Positions 3,869 to 52,866 of a stretch of DNA of 64,000 nucleotides are shown here, piece by piece. Made by a program: the position numbers and the translations under genes. The stretch's first letter is position 1. Every line of letters begins with the position of its first letter. The notes under the pieces are model-generated. The model ran no database searches. It was given only the letters and a program-made list of their open reading frames with translations, and was not told the DNA's origin. Source of the DNA: Adineta vaga (lineage: Eukaryota; Animalia; Rotifera); contig CP075494.1 in NCBI GenBank assembly GCA_021613535.1, forward strand, positions 3,348,001 through 3,412,000, in the 5' to 3' direction.

Positions 3869-4855
3869 TTACGCGTTCGCTGGACTAATTGTCTTCAAAG
3901 GAATTATGTGTTGTCTATTAAATTTCTTAAATTTCGCTTGAATCTCTGGAAGACCAATTAATGCTAAAAATGGTGATGTAAAACTAGAAAAATATGGTAA
4001 ATAGTGAATAATTATATCGATAAATTGTTGAGCAAATGATGGATCATAAAAATTTTGTCCTAAAGTAATCACAACCCAAGGCATCCATGTTATTAAACTT
4101 AAAAAACTAATCGCCAATAATTGTAAAATCATTCGTCGATTTTTTTTCAAAATATTTGGTACTAAAACTGTTGACGACACATTTCGTTTACGAATAACAA
4201 CACGAATTATTATTAATAAATTAAAAAATAAAATAATAAAAGGTGGTAACATGACATCAACAATTGTATCATAAATATTTGGAAGAAAATCACTAAAATA
4301 ACATGCTCCTCCACAAACAAATACATTTAGATCATATTCATGATTTGTTTTACATGGAATGAATAGAACAAGATATGCATTGATACCAATTGTGTACAAA
4401 CAAACAATTATTATTGGAATATAATGGAACAGGATTTTGTGTTTTATTATGAAACGTTTATGAAATATTAAGAGATAACGTTCAATTGAAGCATACATTG
4501 TTAAAAATAATGGAATTGCTTCAGAAGTATAATTCCAAAATATCCAAAATTGACAAAGATTTTTTGTTTGAAAATATCCCAATGAGAGAAAATGAAATGT
4601 AAATGGTAACTCACTGATAATGATTAAAAAATCAGCAATTAAAATACATAAAATAATATGATGATTTATACGATCAAGAAGTAAACTTTTTCGTAATCGA
4701 ATAAAATAATAGAAAATAAGAAGAAAACAAATTATTGATGGAATAGAAAATATTCCTAACAATGATATTGTTATCACACGTTGTTTTAAACTTATTCGAG
4801 ATAAATTGTCTTCAAATATCAATGATGTGTTAGATGTTACACTATTCATGTTCAT
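3869..4855 (-). CDS. Rhodopsin-like (class A) orphan GPCR
   Basis: Seven hydrophobic segments, YASIERYLLIFH (DRY-like motif), TM6 WMP and TM7 SPF. Confidence 0.85.
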   Translation of the reverse strand: MNMNSVTSNTSLIFEDNLSRISLKQRVITISLLGIFSIPSIICFLLIFYYFIRLRKSLLLDRINHHIILCILIADFLIIISELPFTFHFLSLGYFQTKNLCQFWIFWNYTSEAIPLFLTMYASIERYLLIFHKRFIIKHKILFHYIPIIIVCLYTIGINAYLVLFIPCKTNHEYDLNVFVCGGACYFSDFLPNIYDTIVDVMLPPFIILFFNLLIIIRVVIRKRNVSSTVLVPNILKKNRRMILQLLAISFLSLITWMPWVVITLGQNFYDPSFAQQFIDIIIHYLPYFSSFTSPFLALIGLPEIQAKFKKFNRQHIIPLKTISPANA

Positions 4856-5814
4856 TTCAAGATTCTACTTTTATAATGGTTATTAATAGTTTAGTATTTT
4901 CTACAAAATGAGGAAAGAGTAAAAGACTATATTTTTTATCTTAATTGTATTAGAGAAAAGCGAGCCTTCGTCTACTTCAGGAGTATTTGAAGTACGAATA
5001 AAGGAAGACGCAGTATTTAAATCCAGAAGTGTCACTTTTTCCCTTGAGAAAACGCCGTTGAACACGCAAATCTTTTTGTACTTTCTATTTTTTTAATAAT
5101 GAAAGTCATGAAAGAAAAAATAAACATAATCGTTACTAAGTTTTAAATAATTATAGCTATGACGTCCTCCATCTTTGTAAAAAAATATACTTTGTTTGCC
5201 TATAGGAACTATGAAAATGAGATCTACAAGCGAATATTCTAAATGGAGAGGCTCATTAGAATTCGCTTAGAAAATATTAAAATAAAGAAAAAAGTTTAAC
5301 TTGGTTTCTCTTAAAACGACAGTTTGCGATGAAGAAGGCAAAACTTCATATAATGGACTAAAAATCTCAATGAAAGTTTTGTTTTTCTCATTTCATGGAG
5401 TAATTGATGGAATAAGCGCTTCATGAGTACATGTGAAAACTTGAAATGAGTTAAATCTGCTTTTCCATTTGATTCAATAGGCCAATGCATACACAAAAAT
5501 CCATACCTTCATACCAACAAATTTTGATTTGCGATTCTCAATATTCTTTGCCTATTTGAATCTAAAGAAAACATTAACTGAAAGATTTAAGGTTATATGT
5601 TGTAAAGGCGATCATAAAATATCACGAGCGGGGCAATGTCGTTTTTCTAAAAGAAGAAATTATATTTTCAAACTAATAAAACTAACTATTTATATAAACA
5701 AAGATATCATTTGTATAAATAAATGCTTTATGATGATCGTTAATTGATGTCACTAAGAAATGTTGAGTTGTATGATTTTTGTGGAACTCACATGTATTTT
5801 TCTTCGAAAAATAA

Positions 5815-16065: not shown

Positions 16066-16384
16066 GAGGGTGTGGGTCGATCATGAAAGATTTCCAATAA
16101 TTCACGTATTTCAATTTCTGTCTTCAATAATTCAATTGCACGATCAAATGCTTGTATAGCATCACTGATAGATGTTTGATTATTTTTAATATTAATATAA
16201 CATGGTACTGTATTGCAATGTGCAATGAAATCTTCTGAATCGATTTTCAAAGCTTCTTGTCTATTATCATACATCCCATCACTACATAGAGCATGAAAAC
16301 CAGCATAAATGAAATATTTTGGATGAAAAAGAAGTCGATCTTTTGCTTCAACTCGTTGAACTTCTTGAGGGTGTGGGTGTGAGT
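16066..16384 (-). pseudogene. About 290-bp coding fragment of unknown family, bracketed by two same-orientation telomere-like motifs
   Basis: Open frame EVQRVEAKDRLLFHPKYFIYAGFH...ELLEIFHD lies between CTTGAGGGTGTGGGTGTG (16364-16381) and GAGGGTGTGGGT (16066-16077). Confidence 0.55.
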
Positions 16385-21015: not shown

Positions 21016-22101
21016 TTAAAAAACAAAAAAACTCCATTCAATAGGACGAATTTCTGGATAAATTTGTGTTTGTTTTATGATCTTCATTGTATCGAATTCC
21101 ACTTGAATAATCCAAGCGTTTTTTTCGGTAGTTAGTAAATTGCTCAATGTCATAAAGAATATCACTTGACGAGTTGATTCATCGAAGCTAGCTTGCAAAT
21201 TGCTCACACTCCAAAGTGGTGGTGCTTGAACAAATGATCTCTCTTGATGAAATTCACCTGTATGAGGATTCATATAAAGCATAACTATTCCTGTAAGAAT
21301 ATCATTAGTATCCCATATTACAAATGCACGTTTTGTTTTCATATCATATATCATTGAAAGGAGCATACCATGTTTGAGTATTGGATGATAAGCAGTAACA
21401 ATATTTTCACTTTTTCCAACAAGATTTAAATCCATTTTCATATAATATACAGGATTATGGCTTTCAAGGCCCACTCGAATGTCAACAAGCCAATTCTCAT
21501 CTGGATCAAATATTGATGCTCTAGGAGGATATCCATATTGTGATCTAGTTAGTTGTGTATATACTTGTACAAGATTTAATGTTGTTGTATTATACTCTTC
21601 AATAACAATCAGGGATATATTAACTTCACGTGAACCAAAAAGTCGTTGGCGACGTGGATCGTAATGTAAATAATCAAAATGTGAACTATTTAAGATCCAT
21701 AGACTCTGTATATACGTTTTTGTTGGAATATTATATCTAAACAGATGTAATGGTGTCCCAAAATCATTAGATTGTAGAGCTGTAATGATTGTTGATTGAT
21801 TCTGGTCTATAACAGCAACGGGACCTGGAGTAAACCAATGTACATCTGTGTGATTATCTGGAGGAAGATAGAAAGAAAAATTTGCATAAAAGTGAAGTGT
21901 TAACGATTGAAGATCAAATGTATCGATGGTGCCACCGTATGGCGGTCTATTAGATATACAAAGAGAAATATATAAAAAAAACCAATGTACACATATTTAT
22001 TGAATTCTATACCCTCGACTTATTAGCTGAATTGCAAAATATGAAGTTGATGATGCTAAAGCAATATTTTGAAATAATAAAAGAATAAATAAGACAAACA
22101 T
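21016..22101 (-). CDS. Secreted protein of unknown function (possible beta-propeller), 2 exons
   Basis: Signal peptide MFVLFILLLFQNIALA, a short intron near 21950-22012, and an open frame continuing into the 21016-21474 ORF. Confidence 0.65.
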
Positions 22102-23249: not shown

Positions 23250-23369
23250 TTGAGGGTGTTATGTGGTGTGGTGTGGAGTGAGGATGTGAGGGTGCAAATG
23301 AGGGTATATCTTCTTCACTCACATCTACACGCTCACCCATAAGTTCACCCACACCCACCCTCAAGATGG
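23250..23369. repeat. Telomere-like inverted junction motif (long copy)
   Basis: TTGAGGGTGTTATGTGGTGTGGTGTGG...GAGGGTG ... CACCCACACCCACCCTCAAGATGG. Confidence 0.85.
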
Positions 23370-23370
23370 T

Positions 23371-23751
23371 TGGTTTACAATTAAAGAACATGGAATGCAT
23401 AAATTAGTTCAATCAATTAAAAATAATTGTGATCAAGCACAATATTTAGCATATCTTTTATCAAAATATGAATTTATTCATGTATTTACTCCAGTTTCAT
23501 TAAATACTGACAATTTTTTATTAAAACCAATTGAATTAAAAGATCTCGATGAGGAAGAACTATGTTTATTCAATGATAAAACTGTTAATGACTTACAAGA
23601 CAAAGGAATTGCTGTTCCATCGAGAACTAGAATTTACAATCGACGTTTTTTTAAAATTCGTATTACAAATCATCGAAACGACTTTATCGGATTTTCAATT
23701 TTTTTGTTTCTTCTCTTATTGATTTATGTTAATGGAGAATTTCTTCTATGA
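23371..23751 (+). pseudogene. C-terminal fragment of a group II PLP-dependent decarboxylase
   Basis: Reads WFTIKEHGMHKL..SIKNNCDQAQYLA...PVSLN..F...KGIAVPSRTRI...IRITNHR. The whole N-terminal and PLP-lysine region is missing; the fragment starts right after the motif. Confidence 0.75.
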
Positions 23752-23992
23752 ATAAATTATTTTACTTATTTCAATGCTCGAGTTTTGGTTGTTTCAAAGT
23801 CCGTTTCTACCCGCTTAAAAAGAATATGACTCCGTTTCGATACAGCATATGTAGGGCGATAGGGTGACTATGTGAGTGTAAATTTAATTGATATATAAAT
23901 ATGCTACTGCCGCCCTCACCCTGACCTTCACTCATTTCTAAGAAAAGAACTGCATACCCACCGGATCATTGTGAAAGTTCTCGTTTGTAGTG

Positions 23993-25807
23993 TTATCCTC
24001 CCCTTACACGTCTAATTAAATAAATCATTTGCCCATTACTAGTTTCTCCCGATACTCCTGCTAGCTGTATGCTTTGACCTATATATAATGATGTAACCAG
24101 TCTCAATGGTTCCCCATTGATAGTTAGCCCTGATCCATCGAAAAGCCTACCGCTCTCAAAATCTCTAACTATTTCTTGTGGCATCTCATGATCTAATGTC
24201 CAACCTGGAATTTCATACTGGATGTTTCCATACAAAGTTTTCGTATCTTGACAAAGTTCAACCATTTTTGTATCAATTGTTCTGCTAATTCGTTGTGCTA
24301 AACTTATTGAATGATATGCACCATTATCCACTGAAATCACATTAATGCCTTTTTTTTGCAGTTGCGTTTTCCAAGCGTCAACAATTCTTGTCTGAGTGAA
24401 TACCAAATAAACAGGAAAGAATGCCTGCTTCGTTGAGATAACCTTTTCTGCTAGAAAAGTTTGACATTTCTGATTGTACTTATAGTTCTCTGATGTTTCT
24501 GATTTACCATCGTTCTTTGGAGTTCCGCTAATTATATAATACTCACTGGGTATCAAAGGCTTATAACCATCAATATTATGTAAAGACCCATGATGTGGAA
24601 TTTGTAATATTGCGGTCTGTTTAATGTCAAATTTGTTAAGTGCTTGGTCGATTTCATGAAAATGTTGATCTCCAGTCAACACAATTGTTCTATTGTTGGT
24701 GAAGATGATTGCGATCAGTGAGTTTTTGTTGTTATTCTTCTTGTCATGTTTGAATTTAGGATAGACTACTTGCAATTTGGATTCATCGTTTAAATTAATG
24801 ATAACTGAACCTGTGTTGAAGTTTCGTTCATCACCAAGCACTTTAATATCTTTATCAGCATCAAACTTTTTTTTGTCAAGAGGCGAGAGTAGAAACAGTT
24901 CTGGAACTGGTTTCAAATTTCGAAGATATGAAATCAGTTTTTTTAATCCATTAATATGATCACGATCATCATGTGAGATTATGAGAATAACTATTTGGAT
25001 GTCAATCTTTTTGCCTATTTTCCTCAAACATGCTGAAAGATGTTCAGCATATACCATGTAGCCGAAATCGTATATTATCACACATTTTCCAATGACGATG
25101 ACTGCCGAATCACCTTTTCCCTGATTGATCACGTTGTACGAGTTGTGTTCATCACTATCATTTCTATCAAACTCATAGAGGTTATCTTCCACCTCTCCTT
25201 CGTCAGAATAATCTCCACGTTCGTATAATATAGAATCGTTTTCTATAAAATAAAAATCCGATATAGTATCAATGATTTGACCGGGACACCCAAGACGAGG
25301 ACATGTTGTCTCACATTTATATTCTACTTCTTCACTGTCGTCAAATGAATCTATTATATTGTATATCGCATTGAATTTTCGTCTACAGTAAGAGCAGATA
25401 ACCGGTTTTTTTATTTGTTTTCGAATGGAAGAATCAATATCTTCTGAGTAAAAGATTTGACGGTCGTAGTTATATGCAATACCATTGGGATCAACATAAT
25501 AATCCACACTAATCTCTTGATCGGATGTGACTCCGCATTTTGGACACTCATCTTCACACATATAGGTGATCCATACATCCCAACCCATTTGTCTTTCTCG
25601 GCCGTATCTTTCTTTTTGTTTGACGAATTGTCCGTTGAACACGCTGTTGCAGTTATTGCAAACGATGGATTTTTGAAGTGTCTCTGGAGGACACATGCAG
25701 CTATTATCAATGACATCATCTTGATCTAAGTCTTCGTCATCGATGATGTCATTTTCATTGGAATTTTCGTCTTTATGAAGATTCTGCTTCGTATGAGACG
25801 ATGCCAT
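23993..25807 (-). CDS. ComEC/Rec2-type metallo-beta-lactamase-fold hydrolase with two N-terminal Zn-ribbon repeats and a ubiquitin-like C-terminal tail, intronless
   Basis: MBL motifs NQGKGDS, YDFG, SHDDRDHINGL, LTGDQ and QIPHHGS. Cys pairs CNNC/CPKC and CSYC/CPRLGC. Ends LIRRVRGG*. First ATG is at 25807. Confidence 0.85.
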   Translation of the reverse strand: MASSHTKQNLHKDENSNENDIIDDEDLDQDDVIDNSCMCPPETLQKSIVCNNCNSVFNGQFVKQKERYGRERQMGWDVWITYMCEDECPKCGVTSDQEISVDYYVDPNGIAYNYDRQIFYSEDIDSSIRKQIKKPVICSYCRRKFNAIYNIIDSFDDSEEVEYKCETTCPRLGCPGQIIDTISDFYFIENDSILYERGDYSDEGEVEDNLYEFDRNDSDEHNSYNVINQGKGDSAVIVIGKCVIIYDFGYMVYAEHLSACLRKIGKKIDIQIVILIISHDDRDHINGLKKLISYLRNLKPVPELFLLSPLDKKKFDADKDIKVLGDERNFNTGSVIINLNDESKLQVVYPKFKHDKKNNNKNSLIAIIFTNNRTIVLTGDQHFHEIDQALNKFDIKQTAILQIPHHGSLHNIDGYKPLIPSEYYIISGTPKNDGKSETSENYKYNQKCQTFLAEKVISTKQAFFPVYLVFTQTRIVDAWKTQLQKKGINVISVDNGAYHSISLAQRISRTIDTKMVELCQDTKTLYGNIQYEIPGWTLDHEMPQEIVRDFESGRLFDGSGLTINGEPLRLVTSLYIGQSIQLAGVSGETSNGQMIYLIRRVRGG

Positions 25808-26677
25808 ACCCCACACCCAAACAGAATCAGATAGAACACCGTTATCAAGAATACTTCTAAAAAACGAAAGATTATAGTGATACGCCGTGGAATAGACATG
25901 TTTCTAGTTCCAGTCCGTTTTGCACTAAGTCAGATTGAAACCCAGTTAACTGGTACTTTTACATGTCTAATGTAAACCCTTCAATTTAAATGGACTTTGA
26001 CGACCTTATTGTGACAACTTTTGATACGAAAGGGTCATCGTCGATAAAACTAGGTGTTATTGTATTTTTCCCTATCAGGAATCGCAATAATTGCATATAA
26101 AACATACACTTATATATTCGCGCATCGAAGAAAAGAAAAGAATATAAGAGAAGGTAATAAAATAAGGAAAAAGTAACACACAATCAAACACGATGTGTAC
26201 AGCATACGCTTAACAGGGAATATTACGCCAATAGTACGTTCGAAGAATTAATGTGTCTCATACCTAATATGTCAGTCATCACTCCTGCCATAAAACATTA
26301 TAACAAATATGTCGTATTTCACAATATATACGACGCATTACTATTCATATTTGTGTAATATTATGTGTCATTCACCTTTTCTCTTTTTACACGAGAAAAA
26401 AACACAGAGTTTTTCTTGTTCTCTATTCTTTTTCTTTCTCAATTATTTTGTGAGTCAGGTATTGCGTATGTTTTTAAGGTGTCTCAGTGTTAAAGTTGAA
26501 GCATTATCGAGAAACAAAAAGCTGAGAAGTTATATCAATATGTCAAAAAAGACTGCTGCATTTAAAGCGTGATCTAATTCCCTTTATGGTCCTCAATAGA
26601 TTGCTTTCGATTTCGCTCATTTTCACATATATGCTGAGGGCACTATTAGATGATGCTTTTCACAAATCGTATCAAAA

Positions 26678-38334: not shown

Positions 38335-39612
38335 TCATGGTTGAAATTGTTCACAACTATTAAGAATTTGTTTACTTGTATCTACACCACCACACATTAG
38401 TACATTGCCTGTTGAAGGAATGAAACTAGCTGTATGAAAGAAACGTGGTACATTTAAGCATTTTACTATAACGGATGACATTGTTACTAAATTGAAGATT
38501 TCACATGGAGCCAATTCATCGTCAGTCATAGATGTACGACCACCAGCTAATAAAACTGCTTTGTTATTTCTCAGTAAAGTAGCTGTATGAAAAGTACGTT
38601 TACTTTTATTTGTTCCATTCGCTACAAATGAAAGAGTTGTTACATCGAAAATATCAAAAGTATCAAGAACATTTATTTCATCACTTCCACCACCAACAAT
38701 CAATACTTTATTAATAGGTGCTGGAATATAAGTCGCTGTATGTCCAGCTCGTTTTGACCACATATGAAGAGTCGATGTTTGAAACATATTTGTTGCTGCA
38801 TCATAAAATTCCAAAGTATTTGTATATTGTATATCATCTGGATTGTTATTTGATCCACCTATAATCAAGACTTTATTAATCGTAGGTAAAAAGGTTAAGG
38901 TATGACCAACACGTCCAATCATCATCGTATTTTTTACTGATTTAAACTGCATACCATCAAATACATCACCAGAAGTCAGGGCTGTATAACTTGAATTTTG
39001 ACCACCAATTAGAACTATCTTATTCAAATTTGGTATAACTGCTGATTTATGTGTTGCACGAGCAATAGACATTGGAATGATACTTGTTACACCGGTAGTC
39101 GAATTGAATAATTCAGCATTAACATGTGGCATGTATGTACTATTCATTCCGCCAGCGATTAACACGAGTTTCGATGATGGAACTACATCAGCAGTATGAT
39201 CGTAACGTGCTGTTGACATATTCTGACCAGATGTCATTGTTAATGTGTCATTTATGATTAAGAATTTATCTATTGTATTAAGTGCGGTAGTTGTCGATGG
39301 ATTAAAACCACCAGTAATTAGAATAGAAGTATAATTGGAAACAAATGTACTTGTATGGTACATGCGACATGATGTCATATTTCCAACAAAAGATACGGAA
39401 TGGATATTGATCGAACAGAGGCGAAATATATATAATATATTTTTTATTTGAATAGAAAATGATGAAAGTGATTCCAAACGTTGTTGAATTTGGTAACCAT
39501 GAACTATTTGGAAAGTAATTAATGGTCGAGTTCGATCCGTTGCATTTTGAATACATCGTATACTATAATAAATACAAAAGAATATTCGTTTGTCTTTGAA
39601 ATGGAATAACAT
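38335..39612 (-). CDS. Kelch-repeat (galactose-oxidase-type beta-propeller) protein; start uncertain
   Basis: About seven repeats of R..HT(A)....(VL)I.GG, e.g. ARYDHTAD..VLIAGG, KRAGHTAT..VLIVGG, PRFFHTAS..VLMCGG. Confidence 0.85.
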   Translation of the reverse strand: MLFHFKDKRIFFCIYYSIRCIQNATDRTRPLITFQIVHGYQIQQRLESLSSFSIQIKNILYIFRLCSINIHSVSFVGNMTSCRMYHTSTFVSNYTSILITGGFNPSTTTALNTIDKFLIINDTLTMTSGQNMSTARYDHTADVVPSSKLVLIAGGMNSTYMPHVNAELFNSTTGVTSIIPMSIARATHKSAVIPNLNKIVLIGGQNSSYTALTSGDVFDGMQFKSVKNTMMIGRVGHTLTFLPTINKVLIIGGSNNNPDDIQYTNTLEFYDAATNMFQTSTLHMWSKRAGHTATYIPAPINKVLIVGGGSDEINVLDTFDIFDVTTLSFVANGTNKSKRTFHTATLLRNNKAVLLAGGRTSMTDDELAPCEIFNLVTMSSVIVKCLNVPRFFHTASFIPSTGNVLMCGGVDTSKQILNSCEQFQP

Positions 39613-52841: not shown

Positions 52842-52866
52842 ACCCACACCCACACCCACACCCACC
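52842..52866. repeat. Perfect (CCCACA)n tract, i.e. (TGTGGG)n on the minus strand
   Basis: ACCCACACCCACACCCACACCCACC. Confidence 0.8.

Follow-up and report, generated by a model that had tools for sequence, protein, structure and literature searches.

A metallo-beta-lactamase-fold enzyme of the bdelloid rotifer Adineta vaga that ends in a rare, Gly-Gly-terminated domain with homologues on bacterial-looking contigs

Introduction

Bdelloid rotifers are known for the uptake of foreign genes. Here, we describe a gene within a stretch of 64,000 nucleotides (nt) of the Adineta vaga genome (assembly GCA_021613535.1, contig CP075494.1, positions 3,348,001 to 3,412,000 of the forward strand), hereafter the window. 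The gene encodes a protein with two zinc-ribbon-like repeats, a metallo-beta-lactamase (MBL) domain of the ComEC type and a compact C-terminal domain, the tail, that stops at Gly-Gly and that an initial annotation, made from the sequence, had taken to be ubiquitin-like. Our analysis revealed homologues of this tail at the very ends of otherwise different proteins encoded on bacterial-looking contigs, no detectable ubiquitin fold in it, and a second transcript form of the rotifer gene from which most of the tail is spliced out.

Results

The gene and its transcripts

The MBL gene is an intact open reading frame (ORF) for 604 amino acids (aa) with the end ...IYLIRRVRGG* (Table 1), located in an AT-rich (~32% G+C), gene-sparse window in which no tRNA genes were found. 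A second match is absent across the whole genome (100.8 Mb in six contigs, with the window on contig 5). In public sequencing runs from three studies (X1, X5 and X6), contigs cover the MBL gene and not its flanks, and a cDNA adapter remains as a loose end on one of the X6 contigs; because of this gene-only cover, the adapter and the GT-AG joint described below, these runs behave as RNA. The transcript starts ~40-50 nt 5' of the ATG. The coding region of the tail-bearing form, isoform A, lacks introns, and the RNA-type contigs continue colinearly with the genome past the stop codon. This isoform is seen in two independent studies. A potential splice donor, GTAAGG, lies within the RVRGG codons and its use would remove the GG end; it was rejected, as contigs of two studies read through it, an exclusion that holds for the assembled transcript forms. 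The MBL gene is thus real, expressed and single copy.

Immediately around the gene, two further matches were observed. Positions 23459-23650, in the 3' untranslated region (UTR), overlap a plus-strand ORF (23395-23751) and also draw diverged (85-90%) X5 RNA contigs, which suggests that they belong to a repeated, transcribed element. A 208-nt contig from a run, X10, that is labelled as another organism (organism B) matches positions 26152-26359, a short way upstream of the gene, with zero differences; this match could represent a shared mobile element or cross-contamination.

Table 1. Positions, within the window, of the MBL gene, its domains and transcripts, gene D and other features
Feature	Positions	Strand	Remarks
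Isoform A, coding sequence	23996..25807	minus	604 codons; ATG at 25807, TAA stop at 23993-23995
Zn-ribbon-like repeat 1	25433..25681	minus	residues ~43-125; CxxC ... C-x3-CPxC
Zn-ribbon-like repeat 2	25205..25432	minus	residues ~126-201; CxxC ... C-x3-CPxC
ComEC-type MBL domain	24299..25165	minus	residues ~215-503; GKGD, SHDDRDH, LTGDQ, PHHGS
C-terminal tail domain	23996..24253	minus	residues ~519-604; predicted beta-alpha-beta-beta-beta-beta core, then floppy RVRGG
X1 contigs over MBL gene	23489-24234, 24205-25848		genome-colinear, gap-free
X5 contigs over MBL gene	23459-24430, 25616-25858		
X6 contigs over MBL gene	25130-25606, 25657-25818		
Alternative donor, cag/gt	24205/24204	minus	within the Gly codon of ...YEIPG/W
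Acceptor, tttag/CA, and 43-nt exon of the fused isoform	22056/22055; exon 22013..22055	minus	
Gene D	21016-22101	minus	own ATG at 22101; signal peptide; ~325 aa
Gene D, last exon	21016..21946	minus	309 codons; read in the frame of the MBL gene after the alternative splice
Kelch-repeat protein	38338-39612	minus	KLHDC2/KLHL20/DRC7 Kelch Pfam family, 8.7e-24
GGGTGTGGG motif	25810-25818	minus	5' UTR, 2 nt upstream of the MBL gene ATG
GGGTGTGGG motif, second same-strand copy	23348-23356	minus	~640 nt past the MBL gene stop
GGGTGTGGG motif, further sites	16068-16076, 16369-16377, 52843-52863		

A zinc-ribbon and MBL enzyme of a small family

The initial annotation had proposed two zinc-ribbon-like repeats followed by a ComEC-type MBL domain, and both elements were recovered here. 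The ribbon repeats represent an internal duplication (BLASTP of one half against the other, E 8e-5) with the same cysteine pattern in each; Pfam yields only weak zinc-finger hints for them. In the MBL domain, the metal-binding motifs GxGD, HxDxDH, TGD and HHGS are present in order and align with those of the relatives. Pfam Lactamase_B matches at E 7.8e-4 (19.9 bits against a cut-off of 22.7), and all matches to NCBIfam and PADLOC families are partial and far under the family cut-offs, namely, NCBIfam Avs1a (E 1.3e-12) and ComEC_Rec2 (E 2.3e-11; MBL part only, 42.6 bits against 190) and PADLOC LmuA (E 1.4e-14; 47 bits against 420), PDC-M48B (E 3.3e-12) and RTasMBL (E 3.5e-11), with the LmuA and Avs1a matches confined to residues 331-430.

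With the full-length query, an exhaustive search by HMMER across 1.84 billion representative proteins returned 424 matches at E≤0.001, 17 of these at E≤1e-10; the matches listed are the best 150 of the 424. From the motifs and the 424 library matches, membership in the MBL superfamily is clear, and the protein would not be a ComEC orthologue. About 16 relatives of the zinc-ribbon and MBL part, including one from a dictyostelid, were found among the matches listed. This close set, with one or both ribbons and the MBL domain, comprises P0001, P0153, P0002, P0004-P0006, P0008-P0016 and related fragments; the top match, P0001, is 42% identical over residues 29-503 and is encoded on a gene-poor metagenome contig, P0010 is a protein of Polysphondylium violaceum (KAF2070248.1), and the zinc ribbons are kept in P0001, P0153 and P0004. 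Beyond the close set lie ordinary bacterial ComEC-like MBLs with 20-30% identity. Sequence comparison thus assigns the body of the rotifer protein to a small, mostly eukaryotic family of zinc-ribbon and MBL proteins, and, given this relationship and the intact motifs, the enzyme is most likely a nuclease or a phosphodiesterase. The initial annotation had called it a probably bacteria-derived nuclease or phosphodiesterase: the relationship of the MBL domain to bacterial ComEC and defence MBLs agrees with this.

All relatives in which the C-terminus is present (P0001, P0153, P0002, P0005, P0006, P0008, P0009, P0011, P0014 and P0010) stop near residue 503 of the rotifer protein (...YHSISL). Hence, the last ~100 aa appear to be an add-on that is peculiar to the rotifer gene.

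A terminal domain shared with proteins from bacterial-looking contigs

Among the matches listed from the 1.84 billion proteins searched, residues 517-604 match only three other proteins: P0017 (577 aa; tail 495-577, 59% identical to the rotifer tail, ending ...YLIRRVRGG), P0020 (301 aa; tail 226-301, 46%, ending ...YLIQRLVGG) and P0028 (205 aa; tail 122-205, 39%, ending ...WLIKALKGG), the last of which has a full-length cluster mate, P0151, of 652 aa. In all four proteins (the rotifer protein, P0017, P0020 and P0028/P0151), the tail occupies the extreme C-terminus and GG is followed by the stop; conservation of the GG had been the check proposed in the initial annotation, and it is kept in all three homologous tails. 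The four tails share 23 invariant columns, Y..Y..WT.D.E.P...DFE.G.L..G..IN...L..S...T..G..LI...GG, and, of 25 columns that do not vary in the bacterial tails, the rotifer tail retains 23 despite an overall identity of only 39-56%, which argues for continued constraint on it. When full-length proteins and tail fragments were aligned jointly with MAFFT, the tails were misplaced.

The proteins that carry the tail are otherwise diverse. In P0017, the tail is preceded by ankyrin repeats and a region with an HSE...CGAC motif, and a language-model comparison places toxin-type deaminases nearest (score 0.87, no more than a lead); this protein (contig L008, 1947-3680) looks like a combination of ankyrin repeats, a toxin-type deaminase and the tail. 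P0151 has ankyrin repeats and an unassigned region before the tail, and P0020 a WD40 propeller. All three homologues are encoded on bacterial-looking, gene-dense contigs. The contig of P0017 includes genes for HxlR, an arylamine N-acetyltransferase and a SAP/DUF6434 protein; that of P0151, for a methyltransferase, a ResIII helicase, an Mrr-type nuclease, an integrase, RadC and exonuclease VII; and that of P0020 (L009), for TetR, an ABC transporter, a TcdA/TcdB-type glycosyltransferase (4e-13) and a C92 peptidase, with a weak SET-domain match (E 0.001) below the cut-off. One housekeeping gene among the neighbours on L009 shares 61-68% identity with genes from Gammaproteobacteria, Legionellaceae, Tatlockia and Legionella metagenome-assembled genomes (MAGs), and two matching MAGs fall within one GTDB order of 203 species. 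Judging from its genes, L009 looks like a Legionellales contig with a gene content resembling that of an effector island. On this contig, the glycosyltransferase and the weak SET match (4353-5324 and 1802-2140) lie near the gene for the WD40-tail protein, an arrangement that resembles Legionella-style effector islands.

Outside this set, the tail was not recovered. Scans with patterns from the tail alignment found nothing in 185,579 GTDB species genomes, IMG/VR or metagenome contigs of the Joint Genome Institute; the tail profile had no match in the 203 genomes of the Legionellales-type order; and tblastn against plasmids and phages gave no match. Word-index protein searches with the full-length protein and with the tail region gave no match either, and the P0028 tail found only itself. 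No second copy of the tail was found in the rotifer genome. As far as these searches reach, the tail represents an undescribed, very rare domain family, and its fusion to an MBL enzyme is unique so far, in agreement with the initial annotation, in which the fusion was not recognised as a described family. That annotation had overlooked that bacteria share the tail as a module of its own, and also the splice that removes it.

Alternative splicing to gene D

A third X1 contig shares only positions 24205-24234 with the contigs of isoform A; the sequence that follows in it has a single match in the window, at 22026-22055. A canonical GT-AG intron of 2,149 nt joins the two parts (24205/24204 to 22056/22055), so that most of the tail, starting after the ...YEIP residues, is spliced out. 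Examined exon by exon, the fusion product is in frame: the 43-nt exon is followed by a 66-nt intron and then by the 309-codon last exon of the neighbouring gene D. In X1, the shared part has a contig depth of 36.5, and the tail and spliced forms have depths of 22.8 and 22.1, respectively; thus, the spliced form is a substantial fraction of the transcripts in this study, as far as contig depths, which are rough, can tell. There is no X1 cover between 22800 and 23488, which implies that the tail form ends near 23460-23490 and is not a mere unspliced precursor.

Gene D matches no Pfam family and has five or six paralogues in the genome (L093-L097). One copy, on contig 3, is 69% identical and possesses its own start codon, a signal peptide and the same intron; it has no AG at the acceptor position. 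The acceptor used for the fusion coincides exactly with the signal-peptide cleavage site predicted for gene D, so that the fusion swaps the signal peptide of gene D for the enzyme.

The tail and ubiquitin

The initial annotation had compared the opening of the tail, KTLYGN, with KTLTGK of ubiquitin and its end with that of ubiquitin, and had predicted a beta-grasp fold. The end itself, ...RVRGG*, is borne out by the ORF and by the contigs that read past the stop. The opening is not conserved in the three homologous tails, in which only the Tyr is kept, and the likeness to ubiquitin is limited to the last ~10 residues (IYLIRRVRGG against LHLVLRLRGG, 5 of 10 identical), that is, the last strand, a basic flexible stretch and GG. 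As a ubiquitin-like signal, the two invariant end columns and the common stop position are suggestive, not decisive.

Profile searches gave no indication of a ubiquitin relationship. The four tails have no match in Pfam at E≤10; the ubiquitin model PF00240 matches 110 places in the rotifer genome, the MBL locus not among them; and hhalign of the tail profile against 18 diverse ubiquitin-family sequences of the same genome aligned five last-strand residues, at a probability of 0.56%. Against all Protein Data Bank (PDB) sequences, the tail profile matched aIF5A only (E 0.11). Two AlphaFold (AF2) models of the tail, built from four-row alignments that differed in the first sequence, reached a mean predicted local distance difference test (pLDDT) score of 72.9 and 77.7, with about 90 (83-93) in the core. 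In both, a short strand leads into a helix and a tight hairpin, followed by a variable loop, a second hairpin and a low-confidence RVRGG end; the low confidence of the last 3-5 residues is consistent with a free tail. With these models, Foldseek against the PDB (best E 0.26 and 0.11) gave no ubiquitin or beta-grasp match, VIA-align over a set of 48,161 chains listed neither (the N-terminal domain of RsmE being best, at Z 3.9 and 4.3), and there was from the ESM Atlas, searched by features and by shape, no usable match, and BFVD nothing. The predicted structures and the profiles thus reveal no detectable ubiquitin fold. As arguments against its proposal, the initial annotation had named two observations together, a tail that does not model as a beta-grasp and homologues that do not conserve the terminal GG: the first was made, with two concordant models, and the second was not.

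Weak matches recurred to the N-terminal domain of RsmE, which is PUA-like (Z up to 4.3), and to ASCH domains, and a further weak match was with the SH3-like barrel of aIF5A; being below the noise level, none of these was used as a fold assignment. A sorting signal of the type IX secretion system or GlyGly-CTERM type, an RNase-type toxin domain and a sulfur carrier of the ThiS/MoaD type were likewise considered for the tail, and none is supported by the Pfam, profile and fold searches.

Neither did the surroundings of the tail genes point to ubiquitin-type machinery. A Pfam scan of 20 of the 22 window ORFs of at least 150 aa (the whole genome was not searched) detected no activating (E1) or conjugating (E2) enzyme and no JAB protein near the MBL gene; the families present in the window are G-protein-coupled receptors, F-box, ankyrin, Kelch, peptidase and TrkH. 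Near the bacterial homologues, E1, E2 and JAB were not found, with the faint exception of a RadC/JAB-like gene three genes downstream of P0151.

Discussion

A chimeric enzyme with a probably captured terminal module

The explanation that we prefer, and to which we would give about an even chance as a whole, is that of a chimeric enzyme of the nuclease type with a captured, bacterial-type C-terminal module for recognition or regulation. Residues 1-503 would be a resident zinc-ribbon and MBL enzyme that, with its metal motifs intact, presumably acts as a metal-dependent nuclease or phosphodiesterase. To the 3' end of its gene, a linker and a compact domain of ~85 residues would have been added, most simply through capture of the end of a bacterial gene by the rotifer. 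The predicted shape of the domain is that of a small alpha/beta, barrel-like module, not a beta-grasp, with a flexible basic end and an invariant Gly-Gly. We do not take it to be a ubiquitin-type modifier; rather, it may function as a targeting or regulatory module through non-covalent recognition, with the exposed ...GG being part of what is recognised, which we consider the weakest step of the scenario. Alternative splicing would then yield a second product without the module, in which the enzyme is fused in frame to the mature part of a neighbouring secreted-protein gene.

Several points weigh against this explanation. All runs are assembled contigs, so that the ratios of the isoforms are rough. 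Only four tail sequences are available and about a quarter of their columns are invariant anyway, such that the conservation of the GG is suggestive. Placement in a bacterial lineage was reached for L009 only, among the three contigs with homologues (L008, L009 and that of P0151), and the direction of transfer, from bacterium to rotifer or the reverse, cannot be rooted from four sequences. The AF2 models derive from a four-row alignment and are poor around the first invariant Tyr, which leaves some room for an atypical beta-grasp.

Alternative explanations

Alternatively, in a looser form of the proposal in the initial annotation, the tail, whatever its fold, could be a conjugation handle, where an E1-type enzyme adenylates the ...R-x-R-G-G end so that the whole enzyme, or effector, becomes attached to targets, and a protease of the deubiquitinase (DUB) type might trim it. 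Indeed, each of the four tails has its stop directly behind GG, which follows a last strand and a flexible basic stretch, 5 of the 10 end residues are those of ubiquitin, and equivalents of its Arg72 and Arg74 are present in the rotifer protein and in P0017. There is precedent for such use of a C-terminus in bacteria: in type II CBASS (cyclic oligonucleotide-based anti-phage signalling system), Cap2, an E1-E2 protein, conjugates the cyclase through its own C-terminal glycine (PMC10097602; bioRxiv 10.1101/2022.03.31.486616), and operons exist in which an E2-E1-JAB protein is paired with a specialised MBL (Iyer et al. 2006, Table 1 row 6a; PMC1779556), a system now listed as the 6A-MBL anti-phage system. 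Three intact gammaproteobacterial 6A-MBL enzymes (L116, L117 and L118) end in ...PPRAG* in two cases and in ...PPRAGAWK* in one; by analogy with CBASS, this Gly end would be the conjugated handle. However, the rotifer tail displays neither a beta-grasp nor profile similarity to ubiquitin, and eukaryotic E1s read the globular body of ubiquitin-like proteins as well as the tail. Nor does an E1, E2 or JAB gene adjoin the bacterial homologues or occur in the window, the faint RadC/JAB-like gene near P0151 apart; P0020 and P0151 have not retained the Arg pair at -3 and -5; and the rotifer MBL falls outside the 6A-MBL enzyme family (NF058524; 15.1 bits, where the cut-off is 220, from a match to residues 256-292 only). 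We therefore regard conjugation as unlikely.

To a similar degree, it seems improbable that the tail is a passenger or relic, that is, that its bacterial function, for example, as a C-terminal export signal of effectors, is meaningless in an animal, and that the rotifer tolerates a recent capture and partly splices it away. The terminal position of the domain on otherwise unrelated, effector-like bacterial proteins is where secretion signals usually lie; in one study, the tail is bypassed by a substantial share of the rotifer transcripts; and the tail is unique in the rotifer genome. Against this, the intact frame and the 23 of 25 bacterially invariant positions that are kept argue for continued constraint, and the tail-bearing isoform is the form seen in two independent studies. 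Moreover, the known type IV secretion signals are short and disordered, unlike the folded, conserved core of the tail.

Still more doubtful is the idea that the tail is a new kind of modifier handle, a compact domain without a beta-grasp that copies only the last strand of ubiquitin and its RxRGG, by which Legionellales-type effectors would be loaded onto, or read by, the ubiquitin machinery of the host (E1, DUB or readers of C-terminal ends), and by which the rotifer, once it had captured the gene end, would likewise attach or direct its nuclease to targets, for example, in defence. Least probable, in our assessment, is a turnover signal, in which the -GG end would be a C-terminal degron that limits the lifetime of a dangerous nuclease, or of a bacterial effector inside its host: in animals, C-ends with di-glycine act as degrons and KLHDC2-type cullin adaptors read -GG ends, the -GG end is invariant, and Kelch proteins of the KLHDC2/KLHL20/DRC7 Pfam type are present in the rotifer genome, but a few residues suffice for a degron, which leaves a conserved fold of 85 residues unexplained, and the Kelch neighbour of the MBL gene is 14 kb off, probably by coincidence.

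Relationship to known systems

The closest affinities of the rotifer protein are with the unnamed family of zinc-ribbon and MBL proteins (P0001, P0153, P0004-P0006 and P. violaceum KAF2070248.1), of which it is a member, with 27-42% identity across ribbons and MBL domain, the same domain order and the same motifs; the other members lack the linker and the tail. The MBLs of ComEC/Rec2 and their defence relatives (LmuA-MBL, Avs1a, the MBL associated with defence reverse transcriptases and PDC-M48B) are of the same subtype and have the same motifs. Unlike these, the rotifer protein comes from a eukaryotic host, has no ComEC membrane part, and carries N-terminal zinc ribbons and the extra tail; nor does it have a STAND, SMC or reverse-transcriptase partner, and no Lamassu or Avs partner genes (LmuB SMC; Avs STAND NTPase) were found in the window.

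The 6A-MBL enzymes provide a loose precedent for an MBL-fold enzyme with a Gly-ended tail that is tied to ubiquitin-type machinery, although their tail is short, whereas that of the rotifer protein is a folded terminal domain. The likeness to type II CBASS is one of concept only, the whole enzyme serving as its own 'ubiquitin' through a free C-terminal Gly; the enzyme fold is another, the setting is a bacterial operon, and the tail there is disordered, in contrast to the tail domain of the rotifer protein. With ubiquitin, NEDD8 and ISG15, the tail shares the last strand, the basic flexible stretch and GG, but the order of its predicted elements, beta-alpha-beta-beta-beta-beta, differs from the beta-beta-alpha-beta-beta-beta of the beta-grasp with its helix across a mixed sheet.

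Implications

The MBL body itself is a new member of a known superfamily. Of greater interest is the end of the gene: it is apparently only a gene end that was taken and joined to a resident enzyme, which would make this a clean example of capture at the level of a domain. The rare module links an animal gene to effector-like proteins of bacteria of the intracellular type, and its strictly terminal Gly-Gly leads to a testable hypothesis on the exploitation of the rules that govern eukaryotic C-termini (conjugation, DUB binding and C-end degrons). By exchanging the tail for the body of a secreted protein encoded next door, the alternative splice shows how a single enzyme can try new C-terminal modules. 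If the tail is inert, the finding reduces to another rotifer chimera.

A repeated motif around the transcription unit

The motif GGGTGTGGG occurs in 16 copies in the window, against 0.02 expected, and we take these copies to be units of the bdelloid telomere hexamer. Those in the 5' UTR of the MBL gene and beyond its stop roughly bracket the transcription unit, and the copies at 23348 and 27528 have a longer flank in common.

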